A stretch of 64,000 bases of DNA from Lepidodermella squamata (lineage: Eukaryota; Animalia; Gastrotricha), in NCBI GenBank assembly GCA_047495785.1, contig JBLDXI010000013.1:682001-746000 (forward strand). The letters run 5' to 3'. Under the pieces are notes generated by a model. That model had not been told where the DNA came from and made no database searches. It worked only from the letters and a program-made list of their open reading frames with translations. Made by a program: the position numbers and the translations under genes. Position 1 is the first letter of the stretch; each line of letters opens with the position of its first letter. Below are positions 21,901-53,154 of this stretch, in pieces.

Positions 21901-24806
21901 ATTTCGACTCCTCTATGACGCCAGATATTTAATTCAAGTTTCAGACTAACCCCACGTAATGACTTGAGCATCTCGAATATACTTAAGCGGAAAAATCCTT
22001 CCATATGATCAATTGGAGCTAACTAATTGGTTTCAATGAGCTAAAGCCAAAACTAACCATTTGCAACGCGTTTCGATAGCTGCGAGGTAACTGCTGCTGG
22101 TCGAAAGGTACCCGTTGCAACACGGGCGGAACGAGGTGAGCTTTGGCTTTGACGCAACACGATTTCATAGACGTAGTCTCCGACTGGGGGAGCGATGACC
22201 GCCGCACTTGACCGCCGTCAACAGGCGTTTGCTGCCCAGTCTGTTCGTTATTGATAGCGCCGAGAATGAAAGTCACGGACGCGGCTGCACTCTGACAACG
22301 GCTGGTCGTCGAAGAAAACGGCTGCTCGGTATCGGAGGCTGACGTAGTCGCGGCTTCACTCGATTCAAACGCCGAATGCCTAGCGCCCATGTGTTTTTTA
22401 TGCCTCGGCGGGCGCCGGTGGTGGTGGCTATGATTATGGCCGTGATTTTTCAGCGGCTCATTGGTGCTGAGCAGCAACGATGCGGCCAAAGATCGCGAAA
22501 AGTCCATATCACAGCGGAAACAAGCACTTCGCGGCTTGTTAGCACATAAACCGGCTCGTTTCATTCGCGCTAAACTCCGATTCATCGACATAGACATAGC
22601 GTCGGATTCAATATCAGACGTATCGGAGCTAGAGGCGGAGCGAGTGAGGCGGCAAAACGGCGACACTGATAATGGAGCAGACATTCGTGTGAGAGACGGC
22701 GGTCGGCCACTGAGAGAACCTGATCGAAGTTGGACGCCGCTACTCCTCCGGCTGGTTGCGATCCAACTCGACCGGGCGCTTCGAGGTCTCACAGAGGGCG
22801 AGCCTAATTCGGCGGTTAACGCCGTACCCTCTGGTTCAGGGCCACTATCACTAGGCGCCGCACCGACGCTCCGCCGGCCACTTGGTCGCCCGCCATAGGA
22901 AGACATTGCGTCATCGGACTCACTCTGCGAAAATTATACTTAGTTACAACAAAAACAGGAAACGGAAGCTGAAAACGCACCATTTCAGCGATATTTGCGA
23001 GTCGTGTTAGGCTTGATTTACGACATTCGACTTCAAGATCATCCACTCCTTCTCGAATTTCGTAGATTTGCGGCAGCTCGTCGGGGTCTTCGTACGGCTC
23101 CTCGATGAGGACGGAAAACCTCTGCGATCGCAGCGACTGCTTTTCGTCCTCCTCATCTTGCTCTTCGAGCACTACTTCAGCTTCGCTTATCGCAGACATG
23201 ACGCTGTTCCAAATAAATAAATAAAAAATATCAAATAATTGAAACCATTAACATTAACTTAATTCTATAATTTTTTATTGGAAACCCAATTACGAGTTAC
23301 TTTCACAACTACTGATAACAAACGAGAACGAAGGTGTACACAAAGCGTTCCTTTATTGGTTATCAAGCTCGATTGCACTCGTAATTGAGTTCCCTCGTAA
23401 ATACTCAACGCGATGTTCTTTTGGTTTATTTTCGCGTCTTTTACACTCTGAGCAACTGTGATCAATAAATAACACAAACTCTTTGCGAGAGCTGCTCGCG
23501 TCACCACTGTTAAGATTTTCTCCGCTGTTCGGCCGGCTCGAAAATACCGATCCCGACGCGGTAGAAACAAGGGTGCGCGAATGGCTGGCCGGACCGAAGT
23601 GGCCGATTCGGTGAGCAAGTTGAACCGCTAAATGCCGTTCGGCAAGGAGATAGAAAGTAGCCTCGATGTGGTCGTACAGCTTCTCATCAAGCGATCTATT
23701 AAATTAACTCATTCAAATTATTTATTGATATAAATGCAAGTATTTACTTCAAAATTTGATCACGGCTCGCTACACTCCCGGAAACCATAATATTGATAAT
23801 ATGCTCCTTCTCGTCTTCAGATAGCTCGCCGCGGCTCATTAGCGGATGCACGCCGATAATATCGTCATCTTGAAAATCTGAAAACATACGTAAATCAAAT
23901 TAGCCGAATGATTAGCCGCAAATCTTCTTGCTAACTAACCACTTCCGAACCACTCGTCGTTGAGTATATCATCCATCGACATACGATCCTGTGGTTCTTT
24001 CACTAGCAGCCGTTTGAGAAGTCGCTGACACTCAGGGGAAAGACTTGTTGGGACTTTATACTGACAATCCATGATTTTCGTCAAGGTTTCGCTGTCGTTA
24101 GCCTCGCTGAATGGCAACCGGCCAACAACCAGCATGTACAAGATAACACCCAAACTCCAGATATCTTGTTAAATCATCAGTATAACGGCTTGAAAGTGCA
24201 AGAAAATTCAGTCTTACCTGATGCCACGGCGTCGTAAGCATCTCCCAGAAGAACTTCAGGAGCTGAATATGCTAATGAACCACATGCAGTATTAAGCTTG
24301 TCTCCAGGAATGAAAGAATTGCTGAAGCCGAAATCCGTTACTTTAACTACGTCAAGCTTCGGAAAGAATATGACATTTTCAGGCTTCAAATCCCTGTGAA
24401 CCACGTGCAATCGATGGCAAAATGCAACTGCGCTGACAATTTGACGGAAATACTTTCGGGCCAGGTCTTCGCCCAATCCGTTATCCTTTTTGACGATGTA
24501 ATCAAACAGATCTCCGCCATCGCCAAATTCTTGAATGAGGTAAAGCTTATTCTTGGTATCAATAACTTCGTATAACCGCACGACATATGGGTGCTGCACT
24601 AATTTCATGCACCGCACTTCGTGGTATAAATGTTGCCGTGCCACTTCATCCAGCTTAGTTTTATCAACAACTTTGGTGGCCACGACCTCTCCCGTGAATA
24701 CATGCTTGGCCCGCTTTACTACCGCAAAGTGGCCACGACCGATGGTCTCCTCGAGATCGTAATATCCAGCGATTTGAGAATCAACGGAAGATTTCCATCC
24801 TTTCAT
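18949..24806 (-). CDS. SNRK: SNF-related serine/threonine kinase (AMPK family) with long low-complexity C-terminal tail
   Basis: [94 protein letters not shown], and UBA-like [14 protein letters not shown]. Later exons join in phase (e.g. phase-0 donor near 22058 to acceptor near 20200). Confidence 0.88.
21035..21760 (+). pseudogene. Decayed coiled-coil gene nested antisense in the large SNRK intron
   Basis: An acidic exon-like segment ([25 protein letters not shown]) and a heptad segment with a 42-bp duplication ([22 protein letters not shown]) are interrupted by TGA-TGA, TAA and TAG. Confidence 0.35.
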
Positions 24807-25640
24807 ATTTCAAATTAAGCATAACACTACAGCAAACAAAATGTGAACTGTATAACGATGAGGAACACAGCTGAAAATGACATTCAAATTGAACAATTCA
24901 AATATAGAATCCCACCCAGTGACAGCAAGGTAAAATTAGAATAATTAAGTAATCCACTTCAAGAAGCAAAAGCAACTTACTCTTCTGGAGGCTGGCAAGA
25001 TGCACTATGAATCTGTAGGATTCTTTCAGGAATTCTTTCAGGAATTTATTGCTGATATCAACAACCATGCCAATATCACACATTCATGGGTCATGGGCCA
25101 TTTTTAAAACACCCGTATTATTTGACAGAAAAAAACATGAAAAGAGGGTTATCCTGTGCCGTATCTCACTCATAGTTCTGTGGACACTTACTAGTCTTGT
25201 GATTGGGAATTGGGACTTGAGGCTTGCGGTTTTCCAAGTTGAACATCGTCCAAAATCGACGCGGGAGCGCGTTCTCGCTCTTTTCTGGGAGGCTTTTTAA
25301 AATTATTAGTTGTACAATTTTGACACATAATAAATTTGCATTGTTTTCTCGTTACTACTTGCATAAAAATTTTAGCCTAATTGCATGAGTTTGTAATAAA
25401 TTGTTATAAATTTGTGTGTTTATCGAGGCTAGCTGAGGCTGAGTGTTGTTTTTGCGGGAAGAATGTCGAGTGTCGTGAGTCGATGACATCAGTTTTTGAT
25501 TGTGCGTCCAGCTAAAGCTGAACGGGCGGCGCAGGCCTAAATAAGGATAGGAGCGTCTGGAAGCTAGAAGATGCGGAAAATGCCGAAACACAACAAAACG
25601 AACAAAACCAAAAACCAAAAATAACTTCTGCGTTGAGAAA

Positions 25641-27830: not shown

Positions 27831-28038
27831 ATTGAATCAGTTTTTCAATGGTCCAAATAGCCCGCATCGTGGTCCACATTTCTATACTTGGAGCGAGCTT
27901 GGACGATTTTTTGCTGATTTTCTAGGAATTATTAAAATATTGCCAAGCTGAATTTGCATTATATTGAAAAGCACGTCCAGCCATGATCTTTTTCCAGCTA
28001 CACCATGTGGGTGTGGCGCACGTGCTGTCAACAAAGAT

Positions 28039-29170
28039 TCTAGAGTGAAACCTCCACATTTTTGTATGGCTGGAGGTTGTGATTTTTTGAGATTTATTGA
28101 GATCAGGTTTTAGCTTCTCTATGAAGCAAGCTTCTGCTGATTTCACTTGGAAATTACTATTATATAAATAATCGACGGTACGAAAAAATTTTGGTATTCT
28201 GGAAAACTTCACTATGACACATCTTTTTGTGGTGAGCCATAGCATAGTTCTCAGCACCATTCTGGCACGCCCCATGATGTTCCATCAATCTCGTGTTGAA
28301 CGATCTCCCGGATATACCGATGTAGAAACTGGGGCACTCGGGTATCGGACATTTTAGTTTATATACGACGAACCTTGCATTTTGATCCACTTTCAACCCA
28401 TAAATGCACGAGTAGCAAGTCAGATTAGTAGTGCATTCATCTTTCCAGAACTTCGACTTGACGAGCAACCTCGAATTAGTGGCCGTTGTCCATATGATCC
28501 GAACCGGTTGTTTACATTCCTCAGCGAATTTCCTTGCAATTTGGGTCGCCTTGCGTTCGAATCTCTTGCCAAAATAGTCCAAAACAGTGGTCTCGGTACA
28601 TTCGCAACCTTCTCATTTCCCTTCTTGGTGACCGGGTCAGGGTCCAGGGCTATTTTTACCAACTTTTCAGCAAACTTGTCTGAATACCCAGAATCCAATA
28701 GAGTCTGTATGATGGTGTTGCGGGCGTACGCACTTGCATCTGGGCTGCAATTCTGTGCCACGCGTTTGGCGAAGTTTAGTGCCGTATTGTAGATGTAGAG
28801 CATCGATCTCGGGTGGTTAGAGTTAGCGTGGAGGATGGTTGTGGGGGCTATTGGTTTCCGGTAGAAGCGGCGTGACAAATCATTCTGCTTGACTATGAAG
28901 TTCAGGTCGAGCACATTTAGCACGCCGTTAATATCGACCTCGGACGTGAACTTGAGACTTGAGACCCCATTGTGATCCAATGTTGTTTAAATCCAGGACG
29001 AAATCTTCAACTTCGTACGCATTCGCTAGCGGTTCTTTCACCCAGAAGCAGAACACATCATCAACCATACGACGCCAAAACGTGATATTTTGATGTTCTA
29101 GATTATTAGCCTGATGATGGGTACTTGGTACCTGAAACGTCGCTGAATGTCCACACTGTCGGAATAAAAA
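28039..29170 (-). mobile_element. 5'-truncated, frameshifted Penelope-like retroelement (RT palm/thumb plus GIY-YIG endonuclease) with inverted 3' end
   Basis: FWRRMVDDVFCFW (RT), LKFTSE..LNVLDL..FYRKP..LHANSNHP (PLE thumb), VVYKLKCP..C..FYIGISGRSFNTRLMEH (GIY-YIG), EACFIEKLKPDLN. Confidence 0.9.
29106..29146 (+). ncRNA. Minimal type I hammerhead ribozyme of the Penelope-like element
   Basis: TTAGC (stem I) CTGATGA T GGGTAC-TTG-GTACCT (stem II) GAAA CGTC GCTGA; palindromic ACGT stem III; AATAAA at 29163. Confidence 0.85.
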
Positions 29171-32092: not shown

Positions 32093-35000
32093 TCACCTGA
32101 TCCAGAATCCATAAGTAAGACTAGCAGCCATTGTCGACATAAAAACGACTTCAAAGAGGCCATTCTTTGACAGCAGGGTTGCGTTGTTGGAAAGAACGCA
32201 TCTACGCCCAGGTCGACAGTTCAGGTACGCGTTTTCATTAGCCGACATGCCTGCAAAGGCATAGAAAGTGGAATTCGAGCGAACGTTGTCGTAATAGTTG
32301 AAGACCTTGGCGAGTGGTAGTTGAGTATTTCTAACGAATGAGACTCGCTTGAACTGGGCGTAAACGCAGTGCTCTTCTTCAAGAGCGTCAAAATAGAAAA
32401 CCAGGTTTCCTTGGCCGGTCTCCACCCTCTTTAACGATGAAGTAGATGCCAAGCCAACGGAGCTTCCAGACTGAGTAATCTTAGAATCTTCTCGAATTCT
32501 ATTCAAGACTTCAGTTGATTCCAAGTCCGCAATGAATCCAGTTGGAATGCCGATTTCAACAACACACATACCTGATCTTGCGGCAATTGAAATCGGTCTA
32601 CACAGGAAGATTGAAAAACAGCAATGAAAGAGAAAGAATGGCCACTTACCTCACGCAGCTTCTCAACGTATAGTCATTTTTAAGAGGAGCAACATCGACG
32701 GGAGAAAGCATGACGATGGAATAATCTCCCGAATCCGTTGCTACGGGTGCCAAAACGTTATACTTGGCCGCCAGCTGTATCAAGCCGAATCCTACGCCAC
32801 TTACATTCAAAACTACGCTGCTTAGGTGCTGTTGGTCACGAGGTAGATCATAACTAGCCAGCAATTTCGAATTATCCTCGTCGATGGAAAATATTCTACT
32901 AATGGGAAGAGAGCCATCGCCAAAATGGAATAAGGCCGAAATCTTTAAATTTTTCTTGGATTTCTGAAATCGTGCAGCGAATTGGGCTAAAGCTTGAAGG
33001 CCAACAACAGTGTCCTGAGTTGACGAAAAGCCCCCGAGAGAATTTCGCTGAGTTATCAACCACCGAGCGACTTGAGAAGCTTCAACGAGCATGTCATGGT
33101 TACACAGACTCAACAGAGCGTAAGCTGATGTTTCGATTTGATACGAGTCGCTTTGAGAATAGTCATCAGGTCTAGTTTGATTGCTCACCGTAATCCAATA
33201 CATCAAATCACCATCCTTCTTAGCAACTGCAATGAGGCGCTTCAAAGCTGTCTCTGACAATAATCTATCACTTGGTAGCATAGAGAAAGCGTAGGCAACC
33301 AAAGCCAGCTGATAAAAATCGTCCACCGAATCGGCTGTCGCAATTCTGGCTAAACGAGTCCGAGTGTCATCCAATGATGACCATTTGTAAGAGGTTGGCG
33401 CATCCGCCTCTGCATAAGCGATGTAAATATACGCAGCAAGATTTTCATCACTAGTTGCACCCCCCTTCATCGAGTGATGAAGCACTTTGCCAGGTTCCGC
33501 GAAGGTTCCATCAGGCTTGGCGTTCGACTTCAGGTAGCTCCAGGATTTCTCGAATATGTTATTGTCAATTTGAGTGCCAACATGCTTTCTAGCAGCATTG
33601 AAGCACCGCATGACAAAAGCGGTCAACCAGGTTGAAGAATCAGTGTCACTAGCTCCGAAAGCACTGTAGCCACCGTCACTCCTCTGGTATGTGAGTTCGC
33701 GCTGGTAACCCTGCTCGACAAACCGAGTCGTCTTCAATTCCAGATCGGATGTCAGTGAGTTGACCGACTTGAGGTACTTGTAGATGTACACGTTCGGCGC
33801 CAGAATGACCATGGTCTGCTCGCCACACCCAGTCGGCAACCGAATCTGGGCGCCGAGCGATGTCAACGCTGGGCCCAACAGGTCGCCTATGGCCTGAAGC
33901 TGGAACATTCTCGAGCCCGGGACAATCACCTGCTGCGTCGTAGTTCCCAGCATCTGGTCGACGTTGATTGTGTACGTCTGCGTCGACTGCGAATCGAAGC
34001 GGATGAAAATCGGTCGATTGGCGTACTTGATCTCACCCTCTGGTTCGACAGTCACTACCTTTTCCATCGCATCCTGATCTGAGGCCGAGCTACCGCTGAG
34101 TTTCATCTTGATTTCACCCAACCGTTTAGGTTTGATCCAAATCGAGACAGATGTGCCGTCATTAGCTGGAACTGTGACTGAGCGGGTCAGTTGAGCCGAG
34201 GCGTAGGTGTTGCCGTCATCAGAGCTGATTTCAAAGTCAGCTGATTGGTCTAGTACCAAATTAACCGTCTGCGGCGATGGTTGGTAATTCATAACAATAG
34301 CCTTGGCTTCGAATATTTCGTTGCGAATGACAGTGGAAAATGGCACGTCAAGATTGACAAAGAAAGGTTTAAAGACTGTTAATTCAGCAGGTGACTCAAG
34401 TGCGCCAAATCCGCTCTCAGCGCCAATTGCAATGATAGAGAGCAACCATGTCGTCATCGAATCTGGGACAGTCAAAGGTAGGACGAAATCTCCCTTAGTA
34501 CTGCATAAGCCAAATTAGAAGAAATGGGATTAAAGAGCAAAGATCTAAACCTTGTCATATTCCTGGTGAATATGAAAACTTCGGGAAAAAGCTTCCGAGT
34601 TTGAAACGAGGATTCGCCACGCTGTTTGATGGTTGGCCTCGAGTTGGCAGCTGGCAACAACGGCATGTTTTCAGCCCTCTACAAAGCATACTGTCAGCTA
34701 TTCCAGATAATACAAAAAAATAATTTGTTTAACCTGTCGCATTTTTGCATTGCTATAAACAGCCATATGGATTCCCTGACGGAAAAAGATGTTGTTAAAA
34801 TGTGTGAGACAGCAGAAGAAGATGCCATCAACTTACGCGAAAGACTCTCTCAGGATCGGAGCTGTCAATCCACCAAGGCCACCACCCGCATCTCCCACAA
34901 AGGTACGAAATGGGCCCGTCTCTTCTTGCGCCATTCACAGAGCTCAAAACATCGTCTAATGTGATGTCGTTGCCTGACTTGAGTAGCTTAGCACTTTTGT

Positions 35001-37107
35001 CAATAGCAAGCAATGCGACCATGGAACCCGGTTCCGAAGTCGTAACAGAAAGTGTCGTCTGTTCTCCTGGCCCTACCACTGACGGACTGAAGGAAGCTGT
35101 CACTTTTTGGCGAACAAATCCGTCGACTTGGAACTCAATAGCATCTGCAAGAATTTCGTTGGTCGTACTCTCAACCGTCCAGACGAGTGCAGCACAACGA
35201 GGAGCACATCGGTTCGGTAGAATGACATCAACAGTGAACGTTGCCGAGTCAGAAGTTTTCGAGGAGGGTGTTTCTAGCTTTCTGTAGTCAAACGTCTCGC
35301 CAGCATTAGACATAACGAAGTAAACAAAAGTTGCCGGGTAACTGGTGTGAAGTTTGAACGTAAGCCTTTCGCCAACTTTAGGAATTATCGCCGCGGCTGA
35401 TATCGCGCGACTGATGTAAATGGCTACTGACTGCTTGCTTTCGCTGTTTGGCAAGCTGCGAACTTCACATATTAGGATGGAGGGATGCTTTCGTAGGAAA
35501 GCTTTGAAAAGGATCGAATCAGTTTCTTTCGGCGTTGACACCTCAATAGAAACAACACCCGCCTCGTCGGTTCTCAAAGTAGTAGAAGTGTCCGGCTCTC
35601 GCTCGGTAGACCGGACATCTCCGCTGCTGTAACAACTGCCCAGGTAGCGGGTATTGTCCTTTGCTGTCCATATGTAAGCTTGTAAAACGACTTCCATTCC
35701 AGCCCCAACAGGGGTGCCATCCGCTTTCAGAACTTGCATTCTCATTATGAAGGGCAAACCTGGTTTCAGTGTTTTCTGTACAGAATCGTGAACTTTGATT
35801 TTGAAAGGTTCTCGATACAATATGACCATTTCTTCAGATACCCTTGATTCGCCCGTAAGTTCCTCGGTCACGTTTAGCTCGAGTTTTACGTTGCATATCG
35901 GCGTCATCATTGACTGAGTCGATTTAACAAAATTGTTCAGGCCTTTGACACGGAAATACCCGTCGTCTGTAGTACCATTACCACTAAGTTCCACGGCGAA
36001 ATCAATGGAGCTCATCGAAAGGAACATGCCCAAGTAAATGTCCGTATGAGGATTGCTGCACCCGCCAGACTTTATCGAAACAGTAGCCTTGCCGCGAACC
36101 GATTTCCCGTACGTGTACTTGGCTCGAATGTATCCCTCGTAAGATGCTTCCTCTGGATCGTACGTCCAGTAGCTGCGTGGTATGTCGACAGTAACCTCAA
36201 ATTTCGGGAGAACGTATAGCTGAACTGTCACAATTTTTTCCGTCGTCGGAATTTCCTTTCCGGTGACAACAATTTTCCAGCTTCCGAAGTTGACGTAGTC
36301 TGAAATAGTTAACGCTGATTCGAAAGAGCCGTAATCTAAACGCTGGTTTTTCCACTGCTTGATTCTATTTCCCTTCGCATCTTCGATGGCGATATTAATC
36401 TGCCCCTTGAGTGGCATCAATTTCCGATTCAGACAGACAATTCGCACGTTCATGACTTGTGACGGCTTATACATAGCTTTATCAGTCTGAATGAATACAA
36501 ATCTATCAACCACACCAGTGGCTTGAGTCGAGTAATCCGTGAAGTTTCGAAGACCACTTGAAGTGAAGTCGATTGTAACTCGCACGCTGATGAGGCTGGA
36601 AAAGGTTGATACCTTCTGCGGGTTCAGCAAAACCGCAATCTATAGGATGTGTAAAAGGTTTGCAAATGGCTTACCTCGAAAATGTGCTGCTGTAAGCCAT
36701 CTGATCGAACGAGACATAATAGCCACAAATACACGCAAAATTTGGGTAGGGAAGCGCACTTACATGTAGTTTGAGTGAATTTCTGTTCGGCCAAAACTTC
36801 TTGTTCTGCATCAGAATTACTCAAAAGCTTGGCTGTAAATGTAACCGGCAGCGTGTAGTGTTCGTTCTCGAATAGGACCAAGTTTATTTTGAAATCACTA
36901 GATGGTTGAATGATCGTCGGATGAGTTAAAACAAATCTGTATTAGAATATAGAATAGGTCACTAATCATGAGGAATCTAATGAGGATTTGAACTCTCATG
37001 GTCTGCACTTACTTAACCGGTTCTGCAGTTTCAAATTTGGTTTGGAGTAAGACTATTTGCGAAGCCGCTGCCACGTGTAATAGCATAGCAATCGAAACAA
37101 TCTTCAT
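32093..37107 (-). CDS. CD109/TEP-like thioester protein, paralog 1 (single bait exon)
   Basis: Signal peptide MKIVSIAMLLHVAAAS; FIQTDKAMYKP; YVLPKFEV; RKLFPEVFIF; PDSMTTW; thioester GCGEQ (33816-33830); His motif GKVLHHSMKGG; GGFSSTQDTVVGLQAL; MG8 domain; hydrophobic GPI-like tail. Confidence 0.93.
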
Positions 37108-38118: not shown

Positions 38119-41100
38119 CTAGAAGACAACCAAAACGGCTGCCAGTGAAATCAAACCAGCTACCGTGGCCGCCAGATTGCTGAAAATGCTGTTCAAATTA
38201 AAGCCTGATGATTCTTGGCAGTTGGTGCCAGGGGCGCAACCGATGGCGTCCGAAACAGCTCGTTCATCGTCAACAGACATGCCTTCAAACGAGTAGAGCG
38301 TCGAGTTCACGCGAACAGTTTGGTAATAGTTGAAGACTTTGGCAACGGGAGGCTGAACATTCTTGGCCGCCGAGGTTCGCGTCATTTTAGCGACAACGCA
38401 GTTCGGCTGATCGAGCGCGTCGAAGTAGTACACAAGCTTACGATCGCCGAGTTCGATGCGTTTCAACGGCACAGCAGTGGCTGGGTTGACGAGGGGTCGC
38501 GGGCCAAAAGCCGGGTTTGCCAAATTTACGACTCGGTTATTCGGCGGGGCAATGGGCGATGCGCCATCACTGGGCTGGGCGAGCCGGTTGGACGACTTGG
38601 TATCCTCCAAATCCGCAGTAAAACCAGTCGGTACACCCAGTTCCAAAACGACCATGCCGACTGTAGCTTGGCGGGTAACAGGCCTAGAAATAAAAATTAG
38701 CTTATTTTCAGCAATTTAACAAGTTACTAACTTGACACAGCTTTTGATTGTGAAATCGCTCGACGGCGCATTTTGGTCAGCAGATCGCTTACGACGTGCC
38801 GGCATTTCTTCGACAACTATAATAGCGTAATCGCCAGAATCCATAACTTTCGGCGACTGAACGTTGTATTTCGCCGCAAGCTGAACCAAGCCGACGCCAG
38901 TGCCAGAAACAGTTATATCAACAGTTCGCAAGTCCTGGCGATCACGAGGTAAATCAAAGGTCGATAGCAGCTTAGCATTATTTGCGTCGATCGTAAATTT
39001 GTTGGTCAGGGGTGAATTCGCAAAGTTGAACTTGGCTGAAATTTCGAGTTTAACTGGGGTGTTCGACAGTCTACTGGCGAATTCAGCCAGAGCCTGGAGA
39101 CCCACAACGGTGTCCTGAGTTGACGAGAAGCCGCCGAGCGAATTGCGTTGAGACATCAGCCAACGAGCGACTTGGGTGGCATCCTCAATTTTGCCGTGAT
39201 TGCATAGGGTCAGCAGAACGTAGGCTGAAGTTTCGATCTGACTCGGTCCACTTCGAGAATATTCGTTAACCTCTGACTGATCATTTGCTGGCTTCCAATA
39301 CAACAGATCGCCATCTTTGGTCGCATTGGCCATAAGGCGATTCAACGCCGTCTGCGAAAAACCTTTATCGCCCGATAAGATGGACAAAGCATACGCGGCC
39401 AACGCAAGTTGGTACGGATCCTTCGTCGAATCGTCAGTCGCGATTTTAACCAACATATTGCGAGTAGCGTCGAATGATGACCATTTGAACGAAGCAGGAC
39501 CGTCAGCCTCGGCATAAGCGATGTAGATGTAAATCGCGAGATTTTCATCACTAGTCGCACCGCCCTTCATCGAGTGATGAAGTACTTTGCCAGGTTCGGT
39601 GAAGGTTCCGTCCGACTTAGCGTTCGATTTCAAGTAACTCCACGATTTCTCGAAGATGCTGTTGTCGATCTGAGTGCCAACATGCACTTTGGCCGCATTG
39701 AAGCAACGCATGACAAAAGCGGTCAACCAGGTTGAGGAATCAGTATCGCTAGCTCCGAAGGCGCTGTAGCCGCCGTCGCTCCTCTGGTACGTGAGTTCGC
39801 GCTGGTAACCCTGCTCGACGAAGCGAGTCGTCTTCAATTCCAGGTCGGATGTCAGTGAGTTGACCGACTTCAGGTACTTGTAGATGTACACATTCGGCGC
39901 CAGAATGACCATGGTTTGCTCGCCACACCCAGTCGGCAACCGAATCTGGGCGCCAAGCGATGTCAAAGCTGGGCCCAACAGGTCGCCGATGGCCTGCAGC
40001 TGGAACATTCTCGAGCCCGGGACAATCACCTGTTGCGTCGTAGTTCCCAGCATCTGGTCGACGTTGATCGTGTACGTCTGCGTCGACTGTGAGTCGAAGC
40101 GGATGAAAATCGGCCGATTGGCGTACTTGATCTCACCCTCTGGTTCGACAGTCACTACCTTTTCCATCGCATCCTGATCCGATGCCGAGCTTCCGCTGAG
40201 TCTCATCTTGATGTCACCCAACCGTTTAGGTTTGATCCAAATCGAAACAGACGTGCCGTCATTAGCTGGCACAGTGACTGAACGGGTCAGTTGAGCCGAG
40301 GCGTAGGTGTTACCGCCATCAGTGCTAACATCGAAATCGAGTGATTTATCGAGAACCAGGTTGACAGTTTGCGGGTTGGCCTGGTAGTTGAAAACTACCG
40401 CCTTAATTTCGAACTGCTCGTTGCGAATGACCGTAGCATAAGGCACATCGAGATTGACGAAGAATGGCTGGAAAACTGTCAATTCGGCTGGTGACTCGAG
40501 AGCCCCGAATCCGCTTTGAGTTCCGACGGCAAATGCTGATAGCACCCAAGTCGTGATAGTATCTGGCGCTGTCAACTGTTGTGACAACTGTCCATTGCCA
40601 CTGAAAAACAAATAATGTTATTGATGGCCGTACTAAATAAAGCAAAAATCGGTAAGCAAATGGCCATTTTTCATTATTTTTGGTATTTTTTTGTGAATTG
40701 CACACTGAGACCTATGTGGGGAGCTACAAAGCATAGCGTTTTCATGCAAGGCGGTGAGATATAACATGCAAGAAAACACAACAAAGTGGGGAAAACTAGA
40801 CTAAATGAGGCATCTACACCCACTCATTTTGACCCTCGCGCCATATCCACAGTTCGGGGAATTGTTTCCGAACAGTTGCAGGTTGACCAGATGTGCTCCT
40901 TGAGGGGCTCAAATTAGCCGAAGTCATGGACACCATGCCAGGCGCACCTGCCACTCCCTCTGCACCACCGCGAGCGAAAGCAAAATCCATGGCCATTGGG
41001 TAGATGAGAACGTTCTACAACAGAGGAGAAGGGTGTCATCAACAAGACAACAGTGGGGTTGACGAATCAAGAGTATAAGGTTATTGGATCTTATTAGAAC

Positions 41101-44100
41101 TCGAAAGTGTTAAGAAACCGATTGGGGTAGTGATAATTATGGATAACTTGCTAACACAACACAACGTTGTTAATAAGTGCTGAAACTATGGCCTTACGTT
41201 TGTATTAGGTTTTATAATGTAGATTAATTACTCGGTTAGATCATGTTGGTAAATGAAGGTTTCCGGAAAGGCAGCTCGTGCTTTAATTGGCCTTGGTTCA
41301 TCTGGGTCTGAACCACGTTGATACAAAGCCGCTATCATTATGTTGACGTCATCCTATGAATAGTCGTTACATGCAATAATTACGTAAATATACACGATAA
41401 ACCCAGGATTATGTGTGACATTTGTGTATATTAGTTATCGAGACGAGCAAAGGAGAATCTTTGATGATTGAAACGCCATCCTTAAACCTTAATTGATAGC
41501 GAATTGGAAAAACGAAAAATGTGGATTGGATTTGATTAAAATGAGAATTCTCAATCACAAAGAAGAATTCTTAGGTGCATGCCAGGAACAATATTTCTCA
41601 GGGTTATATTGTAGCCTGGGGTGGAGAAATGGGCCAATGGTTTAGTCTCATGCGTCAGATTCGAAATGTGATGCTCGAGTTGAAGAAGCATTCCGTCGGA
41701 AACACATTTATAGCCCGAACCAGAACGATAATAATTTAATGGCAATGATTCATATTACTTGGTGCTTAATAGCTGGTGCAGATAGACTTGCGGGAACAGT
41801 GAGCGAGATCTAGGTGAGACCTTGCACTCAGCTCTTGTTTCTGTTCCGTTTTTGTGCTGCAAATTCATACGACCCACAGATTCCGAAGCCACCTCAGAAT
41901 CGTCCTCCGACAAAAAACGTCCAACAGTGTCTCCACTTTCACTTTTTGAACTGTCAGGCGCAACACTGGGCGAATCATTCACCCAAACGGCGTCATATGC
42001 CACCCAATCACCATCATCCATAATTGCCTGAATTCGAAGTGGTTCATGCGCAATCGATTTGTAATATTCAAACTGAAAGCGCCAGAAAAATGAGTCGCCA
42101 ATCGGAATTTTAAAATCAATGAGAGGAATTCAAAACATGCTACATGCCGCATTAGTCCGACTTGCCATGGGAAAACTGGGGGCTATAATTATGATACATT
42201 AGAACGGCATAGCCAACCTCAACGACAAGAGCGCATGCGATGAAGCAAGATTGATACGTAATAATTAAGGGATAGGGAAGACACAATTTAGGTTGAACAA
42301 GACCTAGTCGAGCTAATCAAACAATTGCAGAAAAAATATATAATTTCCTAAGAGCTATGAGGGATGGATGCAACTGAAATCTGGTCTGTTTGAGCTCAGA
42401 CGTATTGCGGTGCTTAACGTTTAACCCCTTAGCAACGGCTAACCCACTACTAACCCTCTAGATTGCCACAAATTTGGAAAATTATAAAAGCGAATTCAAA
42501 AAGCGCTGCGAATCTCCGATATAATTATTCTGTTGAAATTAGCAATGCCAGTGGAAACGAACTTGATGTTATCAACAGACCACTTCCAGGTCTCTGGGAA
42601 ATGTAAACGAACGCGCAGCTTTTCAGCAGCAGCAGGAGGGGCAGCGCCAACGCCCACCCCCATCGGTGGTAGAAATCTCGCAGCATCGAAGTCCAAAGCT
42701 GATTCAGAGTTACTCCGAGCGACGCCATACAAAGCATCCTTACAATAGGAATAATGATTGGTAATACTTAGTTGCTCGGCAGATGCGAAAATGCGCGAAA
42801 GAAGAAAGGAAACGTGCAATGTTTAGTTATTTTGAAAACAGATGAAAAGTGTTGTATGAAAATGGCGATTTGCTCCCGCTTAAATAAACTTTTACGAACT
42901 TATTATCATGTTGTAACCACAGCAATGTCTCCGGGAAGAGCTTCCGAACGGTAGGTTTCAAGTCACCTGAACCTGACGATTTCGCAAGAGCCACATCGGC
43001 CGACATCATGTCAACCGACATCTCAAAAACGGGCCCCTGGCCACGATGATTAGCCGCGGAAAGCATCATGCGACGTCTCTAGAATTGATCGAAAATTTAA
43101 TTCGGTTGATCGGTTACATTCATGCACTACTTCAAAGCTAAAGTTAAACCGGTTATTAATAATTTGAGGCGTTAAAATGAATGCAAACAGTCAGATAGAG
43201 TGTGTTGTTAGACGAGAAAAGAGAGTTTCCATAGAGATAAGTATGAAAATGAGGACATACCGATCGAGTGCGAGCATTACTCTTGATAGCCATGCTAATG
43301 CCCTGTGGACAATTTTAGTAAAACATGATAAAATTACCAGCAAAAGTCAACTTACGCTGAAAACACTCTCAGCATTAGAGCTATCGACCCACCACGGGTA
43401 CCAGCCACAGCGGAAGCAACGGAACAACACAGGAGAAACGGGGCCAGATGAGCCACCTCCACCGATAGTTCCGACAACGTCATCCAAAGTTATATCGTTG
43501 CCTGATTTCAGCAGCTTAACACTCTTGTCGACTGCCAGGAGGGCAACCAAGGAGTTCGGATCCGAAGTTTTGACCTTCAACGAAGTTTGACCGCCGGGGC
43601 GAACAGTCGCCGGGCTGAACTCGGCAGAAACGTTCTGCCTGACAAATCCGTCAACCTTGAATTCGATAGCATCCGCCAGCACTTCGTTAGCGGTGTTTTC
43701 AACAGTCCAAACAGCGGCAGCACAACGCGGAGTCGCTGCTTGAGGCAGAATTACTTCAACGGTATATGTGACAGTCTCGCCTGATTTCGATGAAGGGCTG
43801 TCTAGTTTTCGATATTCGAAAGTCTCGCCGTTTTGTGACATCAGGAAATACACGTATGAAGTCGCAAAGCTCGACTGAATTCTGAAAGTTAGCCGTTCCC
43901 CGACCTTCGGGATGGTGGCTGTAGCTGAAATCGGACGATCGATTGAAATACTCAGCGACTGTTTGCTTAGGCTTTGCGGCGGACTGCGAGTGTCGCAGTT
44001 TTGAATCAGCGGGTACTTTTTCAACACGGCCTTGAATAGAACGGATTCAGTTTCTTTCGGAGGAGTAACATCGAACGAAATTATTCCATTCGAGTCCGTA

Positions 44101-45672
44101 GTCAGGCTTGCTGTAGCATTAGGCTTACGAGTAGGCGCTGGTTGAGAGTTGTAACTGTTATAAGGTGAATAGCAATTGATGGAGTAACGATCTTCATCCT
44201 TGGCAGTCCAGAAGTAGGTCTGCAAATCGACTTCCATGCCAGCCTGAACCGGGGTGTCATCTGGCAATGTGACTTGCATCCTCATCGTGAATGGCAGGCC
44301 GGGTTTCAGCGTTTTCTGCACCGAATCGTGCACTTTGATGTTATACTGGTCCCGGTACAAGACAACCGAACCCTCCGCCTTAATCACCTCACCCGTCAAT
44401 TCTTCGGTGACGTTTGCCTGCAGCGTTATCGTGCACATGCTTGAAGTCATGGTCGGGGGCGTGTTGTCACCAGCGACTCGCGAATCCTGGGAATGGATGA
44501 TGTTAGTCAAACCACTCAGCACGAATTGGCCGTCGGTGGACGACCCGTCGCCGGTCAAAACAACGTTGTATTCCAGCTGTTGGTACTTGGGCCTAGGAGG
44601 GGTTTCGTAATCATAACCGCCAGGGTAATCATAACGGTAGTTGCAACCGCCGGTTGAGGTAAGGCGCATCCTAGCCTTGCCTCGAACAGACTTCCCAAAG
44701 GTGTACTTGGCCTTCAGAAATCCTCGATAGCTCGAATCGTCTTTGCCGTACAGCCAGTAAGAATACGGGTTGAAATCAAACTTGACCTCATATTTCGGCA
44801 GAACATATTGTTGGACGGTGAAAGTTTTCTCAGTCGTGGGAATCCCGTCGCCGGAATAGGTAATTTTCCAGTCTCCGAAATTCACGTAGTCAGACAGCGT
44901 CAGCGACGCTCCGAAAACACCGCGATCCAACGTTTGTTTTGTCCACTGTTTGATCTGATTACCTTTTGGGTCTTCAACCACAACATTTACGAGACCATCA
45001 AGCGGTTTCAGCTGGCGATTCAAGGCAACGGCTCGGAAATTAACCGTTTGGCTAGGCTTGTACATGGCCTTGTCAGTTTGAACGAACACGAATTTATCCG
45101 TCAGTTGGCCGGCGTAGGAAGACACGTCAGTGTAATTGTTCATTCCAGTTGTCGAAAATTCAACAACTACATTCAAGCCAGAATCTTCTGAAATTGCAGT
45201 AGCCTGCCTGATGTTCTATAAATAAATAAACCTCAAATTCCGCCAAATGGGTCAAACGAAAATATTACCTTAAATACATGCTGCTGTAAACCATCTAATA
45301 CATTTGGTAGATAAATTATCAAAGAAATGATCAAATTTAAAAAACTTACAGGTTGATTGCGTGAATGTTTGCGTAGCCAGAACTTGAGCCTCGCGATCAT
45401 AGCCTGACGTTAGTTTGGCCGTGAAAGTGACTGGTAGTGAGTAGTTGATGTTTTCAAACAAGATCAAATCAAATTTGAAATCTGAAGCCGGCCGGATCAG
45501 GGTCGGAAATGTTATCACGTACCTGAACAATTATTTTAGTTATCATCAGGAAGGATGTAGGATGTAAAACTCACTTGACAGGCTCGCCGGGTTCATTGGA
45601 TGATGGATACCAAGGCATCGAACGCGCCAGGATAGAAACGAGTAAAAAAGGTAATAATATAAAAGGCTTCAT
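38119..45672 (-). CDS. CD109/TEP-like thioester protein, paralog 2 (five alternative bait exons)
   Basis: Signal peptide MKPFILLPFLLVSILARS; same domain order as paralog 1; GCGEQ at 39916-39930; GPI-like tail SSGFNLNSIFSNLAATVAGLISLAAVLVVF. Confidence 0.93.
40824..41014 (-). CDS. TEP paralog 2 alternative bait exon E
   Basis: tag|NVLIYPMAMDFAFARGGAEGVAGAPGMVSMTSANLSPSRSTSGQPATVRKQFPELWIWREGQN|gtgggt; 191 nt (3n+2). Confidence 0.85.
41232..41353 (-). CDS. TEP paralog 2 alternative bait exon D
   Basis: tag|DDVNIMIAALYQRGSDPDEPRPIKARAAFPETFIYQHDLT|gtaatt; 122 nt (3n+2); not in the ORF track. Confidence 0.8.
41759..42027 (-). CDS. TEP paralog 2 alternative bait exon C
   Basis: cag|AIMDDGDWVAYDAVWVNDSPS..CKVSPRSRSLFPQVYLHQLLST|gtaata; 269 nt (3n+2). 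Confidence 0.75.
42563..42738 (-). CDS. TEP paralog 2 alternative bait exon B
   Basis: aag|DALYGVARSNSESALDFDAARFLPPMGVGVGAAPPAAAEKLRVRLHFPETWKWSVDNI|gttcgt; 176 nt (3n+2). AAG acceptors also occur in the TIM23 and SNRK introns. Confidence 0.8.
42900..43078 (-). CDS. TEP paralog 2 alternative bait exon A
   Basis: tag|RRRMMLSAANHRGQGPVFEMSVDMMSADVALAKSSGSGDLKPTVRKLFPETLLWLQHDN|gttcgt; 179 nt (3n+2). Confidence 0.85.
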
Positions 45673-46226: not shown

Positions 46227-47735
46227 TTAACTGACTGTCTTCGCACGTTGCGCAGCTCGCTTTCCGACCTGTGAACGGAACATAAAAAAAAGCATTCATG
46301 ACGAAGGAATCAAAGGATAATGAAAAAAGCATAAATAAACACGGAAGTGTGTATGGGCGCGAGCGTGCAGATGTCTACGCCAGATTTAAGTAAATACCAC
46401 CCTTTTTTAGAACAAGAGATGGTTTAAGGCCGCCTACTCGTATAAACGTTACAATTGAGAACTGAAATGGGTAATACGCGTGCTCAACTACGCAATTGCC
46501 TTCTACTAACTTATACGCGACTTAAAAGCAAGTAAATCCTCTATTAATATACTGAATGAAATATCATCATTCAGCCCTGCGCCCTGAAATCATTACCCCG
46601 AAATGCGATTTAGAAATAGCAGAAAACTAACCTGAGCGTGGAAGCCGGTCTTTATACCAGCAACGGAGCAGCGAGATTGACACACTTCACATTGGAGAAA
46701 GTAGAGGCGATCTTCCTTTTGTAAATGAGTTTCTGGGGCTCGACATGTGTGACATGTTACGTATTCCTCTGCGGAGAAAGACCATTATTATCAGAAGTAG
46801 AAATAATGCAGAATAAACAAACTGATGTATTTTCGCAACACTGTTTCGATATGAGCTTGCTGAAACTTTCCCTTAATGATGAGGCACTCGTTACTGTCTA
46901 CCGAACCTCTGCTCAAATAAACATCATTAGCATACCCGACAATGATAAATAGCCAAAAACAAACTCTGTTCCCAATTCAGCGAGAATGAATGCAAGAACG
47001 TGTTTAGGCTGGCGTTTCAATCTGAAAAAAACGTCCATTTCATTAATTTCACCAGCCAAATCATATCAACCATGATGCGTAAATCACGAGGAATTCCTGT
47101 TTCGCATCATATGACGTAAATGGAAAAAAAACTTACAATCGGCAAATTTCAGCAAAGTTTGCGAACGAAGTTTTCTTTGTACCAGCTCGCATGACGCTTG
47201 GGGGCTTCATAATAAACCGCTTCTTTTCGCCCGAAATCATATCAGGATTCTTTTGACGCATGATCTCAAAAGCGCGATTGAGTAACTGCAGTGAGAGATA
47301 AATTGACATACATAGTTGTCGTAAACACGATTCACAAATCCCAAATACCTCTTCGTAAGTGTAGTCACGTTGGCCTTCAGTTGAAATTCCCGGCTGGATA
47401 CGAGTTGAAGCTTGCTCCACCGTCACCACGCCATCAGCGGAAATGATAGCAGTCGGTGGGGCCACAATGCCGACCTTCTTTTTTTTCTTAGTGGGGTCGA
47501 ACTGCGGCTAGTGAGAATATGAAGTTAATATAAGACAATAATGCAGTGGTCGTCGACTTACTGCGGCATCCGCTTCTGGTGCAGCTTCATCCGGACGAAC
47601 TTCAACGGGTGGTGCGGCCACTGGTGCTTGCTCTTCGGGAGCAGAAGATTTAACAACGGCACTGCTCGACTTCTTTTTCTTTTTCAGGCTAGGGTCGAAG
47701 GTCATAGCCTGCAACTCTTCTTCTAAACCAGCCAT
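46227..47735 (-). CDS. EIF2S2: Translation initiation factor eIF2 beta, canonical-like copy (7 exons)
   Basis: K-boxes [10 protein letters not shown] and FDPTKKKKK; RDYTYEELLNRAF; [22 protein letters not shown]; LAELGT; [12 protein letters not shown] Zn ribbon; ends [13 protein letters not shown]. Confidence 0.93.
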
Positions 47736-48141
47736 TCGTTAAAATATGTATATCGAAAAAACTAATTCGAGAGATAAATCGTTACTGACTTCAAAACAAT
47801 CATTGGAAACAATCATGACCATACATAACAGGGACTACATCAATCTTGCGCAGAACAAATAGAAGTATCAATCATTCATTGCATAAAATCGAGAGGAGCA
47901 AACAGCCCTAAAATTCCGTTAAATAGAAACGCAAGCTCTCATCTCTAGTAACCCCGAAGTTGGGGTTACGAGCTAAAAGGGTAGCAACTAACAAAAACTC
48001 AAGCCAGGAAGCTCTGACCTTGCCACCACATCAACTTATTCGCCACGAGAAATGATATGACTATTGCAAGGTCGGGTATCATCCTCAACGCTCAACGCAG
48101 CGATTGAAAGGTTCAAATTTTTCCGCTTTCCACAGCAGCAA

Positions 48142-50035: not shown

Positions 50036-51128
50036 TCACGTTTGTACTTGTAACGATCGTTTGCCAACCTGTAAACAAATTAGAGCCTAAAGTTACCAAT
50101 CTAATTTGGGAATCGAAAGCTTTACCTGAGCTTGGAACCCGGACGTGATCCCTGCGACAGAGCAACGAGATTCACAAGCTTTGCACTGTAAGTACCAAAC
50201 GCGTTCTTGTTTAATCACGTTTGTGTTAGGAGATTTGCAAGAATGGCATGTCACGTATTCCTCTGAAAAAATGAACACCTGTAGAAATAAAGTCATTTGC
50301 TAAAAATTTCATACTGATGTATTTCCGCAAAACATTCTCAATCTGCAAAGGCTGGAATCGACCCTTCATGATCAAGCAACTGTTGTTATCAAGGGAGCCA
50401 CTAAAGCACAACACAGTAAATAAAATTGCAGCAGATCTATCAACTTACATGGTTCCTAGTTCAACCAGGATGAACTGCTGCAAATGCTTCAATGGACGGT
50501 TCAAGCTGCAAAATATAACAATATTTGTTATAACGTATAAGTAATGATTTTCGCTGTAATTTTATTTTCGCGAAATTTCGCGACGACCTCGGCTCGAGGA
50601 ATTCAAGATTCGCGTCGAAAATATAGCGATCACTGATTAGTTTCTATGATTGGATAAAGTAACGAAATTCACTTATTCATACTTTTTAGCAACTTCCAAG
50701 AAGTTACTGATGCAGGTTCGCTTGGAACCAACGCGAAGTACGTTGGGGGCTCGAGTCTTAAATGGTTGCTTTACACCACCCACGAAAGCTGGATCCTTTT
50801 CCTTGAGAATCAAACATGCACGTTGGAGCAGCTAAAAATGGGTATTCAAAAATGATCGAATTTTGTCTAAAGCAGTAAGCAGGTTAGGGCTCACTTCGTC
50901 GTAGGAATAAAAGTCACCGGACGCCTCGAGAAATCCCGGGTCTGTTGCTTGAGGCTCGGTCAATTGCTGAGCTGTAATATCTGCTCCTGCGGCTAACGAT
51001 TTGGAGACCGGTTTGCGTTTGCGTTTCGGTAGTGTTGGGTCAAATGTGATGGAATCGAACAGCTCCTCGAGCTCGTCGGTTCCTTTCGACCCAGCACCTT
51101 CGGATTGCGTTTCGTTGGCGATGTTCAT
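50036..51128 (-). CDS. Divergent eIF2 beta paralog (6 exons)
   Basis: [11 protein letters not shown]; FYSYDELLQRAC; [18 protein letters not shown]; LVELGT; [16 protein letters not shown]; [12 protein letters not shown]; [10 protein letters not shown]. Intron positions are shared with the neighbouring copy. Confidence 0.88.
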
Positions 51129-52764
51129 CGTTATCTATAATGAGGTGGTAATAACGTTTTGGAAATAAATCATTGAGCGCGGCTTAGTCACCTTTGTTGT
51201 TACGGAATCGGCGCAGTATTCGTTTTGGGGCAGCGATTCGTTCTTCGGCTGTAAGCCTTGATTTGCTTTTGATAAGTCTTCCATTTTACAGGAGTAATTT
51301 GCGATAGAGAAAAATTGTTTGGTGTAAATTGATATGTGTTCATGGTTGTTTCATGAGGAAAATGACTGAATCGTGTAAAAACCCGCCTTTTAATTCGTCT
51401 GATGCGAGCTTGCATCAGCCACACTCACAAGATGAGTCATGCAACCGTTAGTCTCTGCTTGATGATTCATTCGCTTTGTGCCAAACTGTGTCGCAGCATT
51501 GCACGCCAAAAGGTTATCTGCTAGTGCTTAGTTTACGATGGTTTCACCTTATGTGTTTTATTAAATTTTATCACTCATCATAGGTAGTAGATATACAAAT
51601 GCAAAACCCCCTCAAAATTAGGACATAATTCTGGTATTTACGCAATTTAGAGACCTGATAAGCGATTCAGAGCCAATACCATTATTTTTTGATGATAGGT
51701 AATTTGAAAAAGCATGAGCTGACGCACCCATCCAGAAAATGTGACTGAAATAGCTCTTTTGGTCTACTTTTTATCATTTATTTGTAAGGTCATTACAATA
51801 TTACGGAAAAATGTCTTGCTTTTGACTTGAATTGCCATCGAATAGCATTGCGGCCATCGGGGCTAATATGTACATAGGCCATTGCGGGATATGAAGGACG
51901 TCTCTGTATAATCTCAAAGATGACCGTACCCAGAGGAATGCCTCTCGTCATTTCAGCATCGCAAGGAACGGCAGTGACAAAGCGCGGGCATTTTTTCTTA
52001 AAAACAGTGTAATTCTTCGCTTGCGTTGCTTTTCTTGTGCGGCATTGAGGAGAAAACAAGCAAAAGAATGATGTTATTTTAAACGCCAGGAATGGCGCTA
52101 AATTACTTCCGCCACGCTTGCAAGATCGCTAGCAGCTTAACCCACATACCCCCTCGATCTCCGGCGTGTTATTTTTTTCGTGAATTTTCGGGCTCGCATC
52201 GATTATTCCATAATGACTGAACACAGCTACATCAAAAGCTCATTAACAATCGTCTGTAGTCACTTTTATTATTTCCCAATGGCGTGAGACATTTCGAAAA
52301 GCAGCAATGACGACAATTTTATTTCGATCATTTTTACGTATAAAATGTGAGAAGTTGTAATGACTTTTCGATCATTTATTAGCGCGGAAGCAAGAAGAAT
52401 AAAGAACTAGATGACACAGACCATATCGTGATGAATTTTGTCATTTTTTTATATCGCATCAGATATTTATATATGCTGTAATCTTGTATATCACTAGTTG
52501 AGTTATACCCGGTTCGATCAATCATCTCGTTTGCGATAGAAAATCACACGAAAGTGACAACAATGAACAGAATACAACTGAGAGATGATATACAACATCA
52601 AAGCGAGTTCATGCGATTTTTTTAACAATATAAGGCTCTGAGTACAGCAGTTTTATATCCTTCGTACTAACAAATACGTTTAATATATAACTAATCAGAA
52701 AATTTTGTTGCGGTTTGTCGCCGATGCGACTCGCTGTTGACCGGGCGATGTTTGCGTGACGTAT

Positions 52765-53154
<390 letters not shown>

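Follow-up and report, generated by a model that had tools for sequence, protein, structure and literature searches.

Five alternative bait-region exons in a CD109-like thioester protein gene of the gastrotrich Lepidodermella squamata

Known bait-exon arrays and the gastrotrich gene

Arrays of alternative exons for the bait region of thioester proteins (TEPs) have been published for several animals. Among them are Drosophila Tep2 with five exons and Chlamys CfTEP with six exons and seven isoforms, as described in passages of PMC7016707 and PMC6071210, and the former also covers Biomphalaria BgTEP2 (12 exons), BgCD109 (eight variants predicted, four seen) and BgA2M, together with shrimp and tick A2M. 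The gene considered here lies on the minus strand at 45672-38119 of a 64,000-nucleotide stretch of the gastrotrich Lepidodermella squamata (contig JBLDXI010000013.1, positions 682,001 to 746,000), hereafter the window, and carries five alternative bait exons, A to E, the observation of which is confirmed. The best explanation overall, to which a probability of roughly 0.8 is assigned, is that these are five tandem-duplicated, mutually exclusive bait exons in a CD109-like thioester protein.

Biomphalaria glabrata provides a spiralian counterpart in which CD109/insect-type TEPs have tandem mutually exclusive bait-region exons. In the passages of PMC7016707 that describe them, the variable parts of these exons are unrelated in length and composition, the C-terminal part is strongly conserved, and only some variants were recovered from transcriptomes, all of which is also true of the gastrotrich gene. 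The two differ in scale, with five exons in 2.3 kb in the gastrotrich and 12 over 30 kb in BgTEP2 (PMC7016707), and in ancestry, the gastrotrich genes falling in a separate lineage-specific clade, so that the arrays are probably independent expansions. Conserved intronic RNA pairing, which is described below for the gastrotrich gene, receives no mention for the Biomphalaria arrays in the same passages. The scallop Chlamys farreri likewise has mutually exclusive bait exons in a spiralian TEP (CfTEP; Zhang et al. 2009, cited in PMC7016707), and isoform use there is said in the cited passages to depend on sex and on the challenge pathogen (PMC7016707); such regulation would be a prediction for the gastrotrich gene. 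In Drosophila melanogaster, Tep2 (TepII) has five alternative bait exons with one per transcript (Lagueux et al. 2000, as cited in passages of PMC7016707 and PMC6071210), and the gene is listed among the fly multi-exon mutually exclusive clusters (PMC6071210). Homology of the Tep2 and gastrotrich arrays is unlikely because of the tree described below. Tep2 is presumably a secreted insect TEP without a GPI-type (glycosylphosphatidylinositol-type) tail.

Human CD109 (PDB 8s3o, 9fx2), at ~35% identity, has the domain order and the thioester of the gastrotrich protein as well as a furin-type site ahead of MG8, and its GPI-type C-terminus has a GPI-like counterpart by sequence reading. Once its bait is cleaved, human CD109 traps proteases (PMC12927315); it is described with one bait region in the cited sources, splice forms left aside. 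The original prediction for this locus, made from the window sequence, cited Drosophila Tep2 alone and overrated the novelty, as snail CD109 and mollusc TEPs have also been published (passages of PMC7016707). The additions made by the gastrotrich gene are a new phylum, a compact five-exon cluster, conservation in two species, evidence for an independent origin and a candidate RNA bridge. Gastrotricha, a little-studied phylum for which literature searches found no TEP paper, thereby joins the animals that diversify the TEP bait by exon choice.

The gene was modelled from stop-free segments and splice sites as eight exons; with exon E in sixth place the model has 4824 nt, keeps its frame and encodes 1607 residues. 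Its parts are as follows, in window positions.

45575-45672, minus strand: exon 1, start codon and signal peptide MKPFILLPFLLVSILA, donor GTGAGT, phase 2; from sequence reading, without RNA junction
45350-45522, minus strand: exon 2, part of MG1, donor GTAAGT, phase 1; from the in-frame model
45269-45294, minus strand: exon 3, 26-nt micro-exon ..GLQQHVFK, required for the frame; tandem paralog counterpart GLQQHIFE
43356-45215, minus strand: exon 4, MG2, MG3, MG4 and A2M_BRD by Pfam; 3' end set by the RNA joint 43356>43302
43261-43302, minus strand: exon 5, constitutive, 42 nt, GISMAIKSNARTRS, phase-0 donor; RNA joints to exon 4, A, B and E
one of A-E, minus strand: exon 6
38732-40600, minus strand: exon 7, phase-2 acceptor, remainder of A2M, thioester domain with GCGEQ, RRKR near the end
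38119-38683, minus strand: exon 8, A2M_recep (MG8) and hydrophobic C-terminal tail; stop TAG at 38121-38119

Along exons 4, 7 and 8, Pfam places MG2, MG3, MG4, A2M_BRD, A2M, TED_complement (E 5.5e-81) and A2M_recep in that order, with the A2M and TED domains in exon 7 and A2M_recep in exon 8. The thioester motif ..PTGCGEQTM.. is intact in exon 7 and invariant across an alignment with paralogs and relatives. A phmmer search of PDB with exon 7 ranked CD109 first (358 bits), followed by A2ML1 (248), A2M (245), Anopheles TEP1 (223), C4 (181) and C3 (152). Exon 4 gave the same rank order with human CD109 on top, and the named protein-database matches to exon 7 are mostly entitled 'CD109 antigen'. 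Anaphylatoxin, C345C/NTR and LDLa domains were found by Pfam in none of the exons, and the gene stops directly after A2M_recep. By its sequence, then, the gene is a member of the TEP/alpha-2-macroglobulin superfamily, and human CD109 is the nearest solved relative of its product; the Pfam domains, the GCGEQ motif and the best PDB match bear out the family to which the locus had been assigned.

The RRKR furin-type site lies near the end of exon 7, before MG8, and comparable basic sites can be read in one paralog (C38) and in a gene of a relative (L024), both described below. The C-terminus, ..QESSGFNLNSIFSNLAATVAGLISLAAVLVVF-stop, consists of small residues and then a hydrophobic stretch with no cytoplasmic residues, which is GPI-like by reading, and the relative's protein has a similar hydrophobic C-terminal tail. 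Because of the RRKR site and the terminal hydrophobic stretch after small residues, the gene matches the furin-processed, GPI-anchored design of CD109 (PMC12927315), and its product is probably a secreted, furin-processed, GPI-anchored CD109-like thioester protein. The GPI-type membrane protein of the original prediction is upheld as far as the signal peptide and the GPI-like tail are concerned, the anchor itself being predicted from sequence reading.

The five bait exons and their transcripts

The variable exons lie between exons 5 and 7 and are listed here in the order of transcription.

42900-43078, minus strand: bait exon A, 179 nt, Arg/Met-rich, ..RKLFPETLLW..; RNA joint 43261>43078; codon score 0.25
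42563-42738, minus strand: bait exon B, 176 nt, Ala/Pro/Gly-rich, ..RLHFPETWKW..; RNA joint 43261>42738; codon score 0.42
41759-42027, minus strand: bait exon C, 269 nt, acidic/Ser-rich, ..RSLFPQVYLH.., the most deviant tail; codon score 0.30
41232-41353, minus strand: bait exon D, 122 nt, the shortest, ..RAAFPETFIY..; codon score 0.21
40824-41014, minus strand: bait exon E, 191 nt, Met/Gly/Ala-rich, ..RKQFPELWIWREGQ..; both RNA junctions; codon score 0.24

On the minus strand all five stand between an AG and a GT, have lengths of 3n+2 with a phase-0 acceptor and a phase-2 donor, and read without a stop in the frame given by the phase-0 donor of exon 5. Near the 3' end of every one stands RxxFP[EQ] (RKLFPE, RLHFPE, RSLFPQ, RAAFPE, RKQFPE), and the donor follows the FP[EQ] codon by nine codons and 2 nt (29 nt) in 5/5 exons. 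Since this spacing is identical in all five, the 3' ends are homologous rather than chance open reading frames (ORFs); the homology is limited to the last ~19 residues. When the entire interval between exons 5 and 7 was scanned for the motif, exactly five ORFs bearing it were returned, A to E, and every detail that had been given for these exons (coordinates, AG/GT boundaries, lengths, RxxFP[EQ] ends) was reproduced by script. For exon C a second in-frame acceptor candidate with a better pyrimidine tract is present at 42072, and either acceptor is possible; the open stretch upstream of the listed acceptor scores like noncoding DNA in codon usage.

The frame rule proposed earlier, by which the use of none or two of the exons shifts the frame, holds for every combination: joining 0, 2, 3, 4 or 5 exons gives a premature stop in 27/27 cases (the skip and 26 multiples), and each single exon leaves the frame open. 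In the proposed mechanism, one exon would be chosen per mRNA. Because every exon is 3n+2, an mRNA with none or several of them is out of frame and meets an early stop, and such mRNAs would presumably be degraded. The outcome would be up to five proteins, identical save for the protease-sensitive bait, with each bait perhaps cleaved by a different set of proteases and so triggering exposure of the thioester. Immune function and differing protease specificities are suggested by analogy with the family.

That the variable position is the TEP bait region, as had been proposed, is apparent from Pfam, in which A to E occupy the gap between A2M_BRD, ending within exon 4, and A2M, matched by exon 7 only from model position 14. 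In a paralog with the bait fused into a large exon, the A2M model starts at the residue directly after FPE, and for this reason each variable exon is read as encoding the bait linker together with the initial strand of the MG domain that follows. Searched singly, A to E match no Pfam family, and exon E returned only noise from PDB. The exon C peptide had no match in the protein database, a blank that is uninformative, as own-genome records may be left out there.

Transcript evidence comes from public sequencing runs, three of which were found; run contigs were placed on the window, among them those of X1 and X2. X2 is DNA, since introns and exons are covered alike. X1, labelled only 'RNA?', was treated as cDNA because its coverage is confined to exons with zero intron depth and its GT..AG joints fall exactly at the predicted boundaries. 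In X1 the 53-nt intron 43303-43355 between exons 4 and 5 is removed. A single 335-nt contig with a depth of 43 contains both joints of exon E, 43261>41014 and 40824>40600, while the joint 43261>42738 to exon B has a depth of 22 and a 31-nt anchor, and the joint 43261>43078 to exon A has a depth of 4 with 21 nt on its shorter side. The joint of E is thus strong and that of B good, and that of A is weaker because its anchor is just 21 nt. No contig joining two variable exons is present in X1, although contigs drop rare forms, and contig depths are not readable as isoform ratios.

At least three of the five exons (A, B and E) are therefore spliced in alternatively, and exon E, which lies closest to the downstream acceptor, predominates in the single RNA sample. 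The original prediction looked to junctions from 43261 to all five acceptors and from each donor to 40600; those to A, B and E and from the E donor were recovered, and C and D were without coverage. The alternative outcome, in which only one exon is ever spliced in, does not describe the locus, as three exons are joined to exon 5. Within exon A (42965-43074), opposite strands are joined in one X1 contig (depth 6), probably an assembly or library artefact.

A codon-usage score contrasting ~10,000 codons of this genome's TEP exons with local noncoding DNA was computed for all five exons. In the proposed frame A to E score 0.25, 0.42, 0.30, 0.21 and 0.24, and the other two frames score lower. Among 142 stop-free noncoding ORFs of at least 40 codons, the mean is -0.09 and the maximum 0.26; exon C exceeds all 142, and the score of exon D is reached by 4% of them. 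In the DNA run X2, a heterozygous 3-nt insertion (AGG) at 42633 lies in the Ala/Pro-rich part of exon B and keeps the frame; the other indels listed in the region are all intronic.

Relatives, paralogs and intronic pairing

A protein search with exon 7 returned four proteins of 44-65% identity from environmental assemblies, all others being at or below 38%; the named matches come from a mite, annelids and molluscs and reach no more than 36-38%. The 65% match, measured over exon 7, belongs to an orthologous gene on a 5.7-kb metagenome contig of a related species, L023. Its layout consists of the end of the BRD exon, a 42-nt exon SINMVIKSNARTGS (10/14 residues identical by eye), an array of ~2.1 kb and an exon with a phase-2 acceptor. 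The array comprises the following exons, in contig positions.

964-1097: L023 exon r1, 134 nt, AG/GT, 3n+2
1241-1416: L023 exon r2, 176 nt, AG/GT, 3n+2
1611-1774: L023 exon r3, 164 nt, AG/GT, 3n+2
1967-2142: L023 exon r4, 176 nt, AG/GT, 3n+2
2342-2547: L023 exon r5, 206 nt, AG/GT, 3n+2

The comparison with a relative, which had been put forward as a check on the array, thus found five exons again, all intact. Exons E and r5 are clear orthologs, with 41% identity and 12/19 tail residues in common. Between the window gene and L023 the constant parts are ~66% identical and the bait exons 27-41%. From this layout and these identities it follows that the array is older than the split of the two species, intact in both and fast-evolving; divergence is two to three times faster in the bait exons than in the other parts of the protein, a pattern to be expected where a protein meets foreign proteases. 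Further relatives were sought in two scans of JGI metagenome contigs, which yielded nothing closer than 37% identity, and a search with exon 4 added one further relative contig, L107, which ends before the array.

At least ten TEP paralogs are present in the genome (121.2 Mb, 151 contigs), the assembly of which contains no copy of mitochondrial COX1. Apart from the five-bait gene, an array occurs only in the paralog at G000:C38:322585-327207 (loci L022 and L003), where the two bait exons measure 173 and 200 nt and are each 3n+2. The ortholog of this paralog in a relative, L024, also has two bait exons, and in all other paralogs the bait is either a single exon or fused. The paralog at G000:C10:1553223-1556657 is nearly intron-free, its open frame extending over as many as 1312 residues. 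Within the window, the gene is followed by a tandem paralog (32096-37107, minus) that has a single bait exon, as had been noted, and lacks the furin-type basic site before its last exon.

34551-34678, minus strand: bait exon of the tandem paralog (gene ~37107-32096), 128 nt, AG/GT, 3n+2

In a tree of the family, the genome's own paralogs and the genes of the relative form one lineage-specific clade with a support of 100, except for the long-branched own_C13b. The clade sits among CD109/insect-TEP-like proteins, the deep forks being without resolution and no true A2M outgroup standing among the rows. Within it, L023 is sister to the five-bait gene plus the tandem single-bait paralog, with supports of 93 and 99. 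Long stretches of the thioester exon are identical between the two tandem genes. Given this tree position and these visible identical stretches, the single-bait neighbour appears to be a derived copy or to have been gene-converted in the thioester exon, and the sequences of the pair suggest a recent duplication or gene conversion.

Since the bait is single or fused in most members of the clade, the arrays probably originated within it, and by sequence comparison they are probably independent of the mollusc and fly arrays. The suggestion that the array evolved independently, made tentatively at the outset, is plausible on the same grounds. Arrays that appear to have arisen within a lineage-specific expansion support repeated convergent invention wherever the bait has its own exon.

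Selection of exons guided by RNA structure is documented mainly in arthropods and in a few vertebrate genes (PMC4691838, PMC6071210). In the exon 4 and 9 clusters of Dscam1 and in 14-3-3zeta, an element downstream of a variable exon pairs at long range with the last intron, and the pairing is conserved between species (PMC4691838, PMC6071210). A repeat scan of the gastrotrich cluster identified a similar arrangement, a 16-nt pair with 15/16 complementary positions between the intron after A and the last intron; folded as a duplex, the window pair 42879-42855 / 40675-40649 forms 22 bp at -26.1 kcal/mol. In L023 the same scan found a 21-nt pair in the two corresponding introns, which folds to 24 bp at -35.7 kcal/mol.

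42855-42879, minus strand: selector-like element, 21-45 nt downstream of the exon A donor; pairs with 40649-40675
40649-40675, minus strand: docking-like element, 48-74 nt upstream of the exon 7 acceptor; pairs with 42855-42879
1147-1167 and 2662-2682 of L023: the pairing elements of the relative, 50-70 nt after r1 and 85-105 nt before the acceptor

Significance was assessed by an ungapped complementarity score against dinucleotide shuffles (n=2000), the L023 intron pair being fixed beforehand by the window result. The observed complementarity was reached by 10/2000 shuffles in the window and by 0/2000 in L023. All other introns score at background against the last intron in both species; in the window, the introns B-C, C-D and D-E give 18.5-22.5, where the null mean is 20.6. 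Apart from the helix, the introns of the two genes cannot be aligned with each other, and the helices share the core GCCAUU:AAUGGC and differ elsewhere, with GCGCAG:CUGCGC in L023 and AGCAAAU:AUUUGCU in the window.

Several other possibilities were considered and set aside. The energy of whole-intron duplexes was dropped as a statistic in favour of the ungapped score, such duplexes being long and loopy. A docking site in the intron upstream of A was discarded, as no intron pairs with that intron above background, and so was a common docking site for B, C and D, the best duplexes for which lie at differing places with background scores. The pairing element is unique in the genome, which rules out a transposon origin of the selector element.

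The pairing would loop out 2.2 kb in the window or 1.5 kb in L023 and would bring the most distal donor to the common acceptor of exon 7, probably aiding the use of the distal exon. It falls short of a full docking/selector system, since nothing comparable pairs next to B, C or D; as read from sequence, a strong partner at the most distal exon only would make a single RNA bridge, in contrast with the competing selectors of arthropod clusters. Whether the helix is a working RNA bridge for exon choice, in which case structure-guided selection would also have arisen in Spiralia, independently and on a TEP bait array, can be put forward tentatively, at somewhat under even odds. Five exons in 2.3 kb with pairing in two species constitute a small testable model for how a distal alternative exon is reached.

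Competing explanations and neighbouring features

A number of observations weigh against five working, mutually exclusive exons. X1 is a single RNA-like run with whole-contig data from unspecified tissue and condition, and its RNA status is a guess, though exon-only coverage and exact GT..AG joints favour RNA. Its contigs list no joints from the donors of A and B to 40600, and the acceptor of A has an anchor of only 21 nt. In this one run exons C and D have zero depth, whereas A, B and E are covered, as would be the case if only these three worked and C and D were recently silenced duplicates, or pseudo-exons, that have not yet acquired stops. The pyrimidine tracts before C and D are weak, and neither has a clear ortholog in L023; only E and r5 are clearly one-to-one, so that the equal count of five could partly reflect turnover. 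The tail of C shares just 3-7 of 19 residues with the other tails, its FPQVYLH has none of the Trp residues that the other exons retain, and its peptide has no database match, uninformative though that blank is. Against silencing, both exons have retained their AG/GT boundaries, a length of 3n+2, an open frame and a donor at the exact distance, and their codon scores match those of the expressed A and E and lie above nearly all stop-free noncoding ORFs. L023 likewise retains five intact exons, and the absence from transcripts concerns a single RNA sample; partial detection is usual, four of the eight predicted variants of Biomphalaria CD109 having been seen in transcriptomes according to passages of PMC7016707. 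Silencing of C and D is an unlikely account, and the two intact exons are probably used under other conditions.

The purpose of the isoforms and the meaning of the helix allow different readings even with five working exons, and both of the competing readings, though improbable, are a little less so than silencing. The isoforms may tune a housekeeping or developmental CD109-like role, directed at the animal's own proteases or at signalling, by tissue or stage instead of forming a repertoire against pathogens. Human CD109 is a surface protease inhibitor that modulates TGF-beta and STAT3 signalling and has a furin-processed form released after bait cleavage (PMC12927315), and the gastrotrich gene retains the RRKR furin-type site and the GPI-like tail; single scallop isoforms are sex-specific in gonads (cited in passages of PMC7016707). 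The low identity of the bait exons (27-41% vs ~66% elsewhere) and the family expansion to at least ten paralogs are, however, typical of host-pathogen interfaces, and scallop and shrimp isoforms respond to infection (passages of PMC7016707). As for the helix, the inverted repeat may be due to chance or neutral, with the choice of exon made by splice-site strength, protein factors and the frame rule. Of the four non-proximal exons, just one is strongly matched to the docking element, B, C and D having no partner above background, and exon A is the least covered of the expressed exons despite its pairing. The window test is modest (10/2000), a full-length duplex test gave z = -2, and a comparison of two species gives little true covariation. 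A chance origin is nevertheless doubtful, as the corresponding intron pair of L023, fixed before the test, has the top complementarity (0/2000 shuffles) among introns that are otherwise unalignable, the helix is kept with partly different sequence around the common GCCAUU:AAUGGC core, and the element is not a repeat family.

The remainder of the window contains features that are separate from the array. Just upstream of the TEP pair, two tandem, similar multi-exon genes on the minus strand (46596-47738 and 50096-51134) resemble eIF2-beta; one piece gives a weak Pfam eIF-5_eIF-2B match below the family cut-off. A single-exon gene at 52768-53034 (minus) encodes an LC8-type dynein light chain (Pfam Dynein_light, E 5e-44), a type that is not cilia-specific. 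Overlapping long ORFs of 120-188 aa at 27925-28986 (minus) contain a GIY-YIG-like stretch by eye and may be a decayed mobile element; they are retroelement-like by eye and have no Pfam match. The GC content, ~0.44 for the window, rises to 0.60 in a 2-kb block at 12001-14000 compared with ~0.43 elsewhere, and an exon at 24180-24809 (minus) codes for the N-terminal portion of a Ser/Thr protein kinase domain (Pfam Pkinase, E 7e-51).

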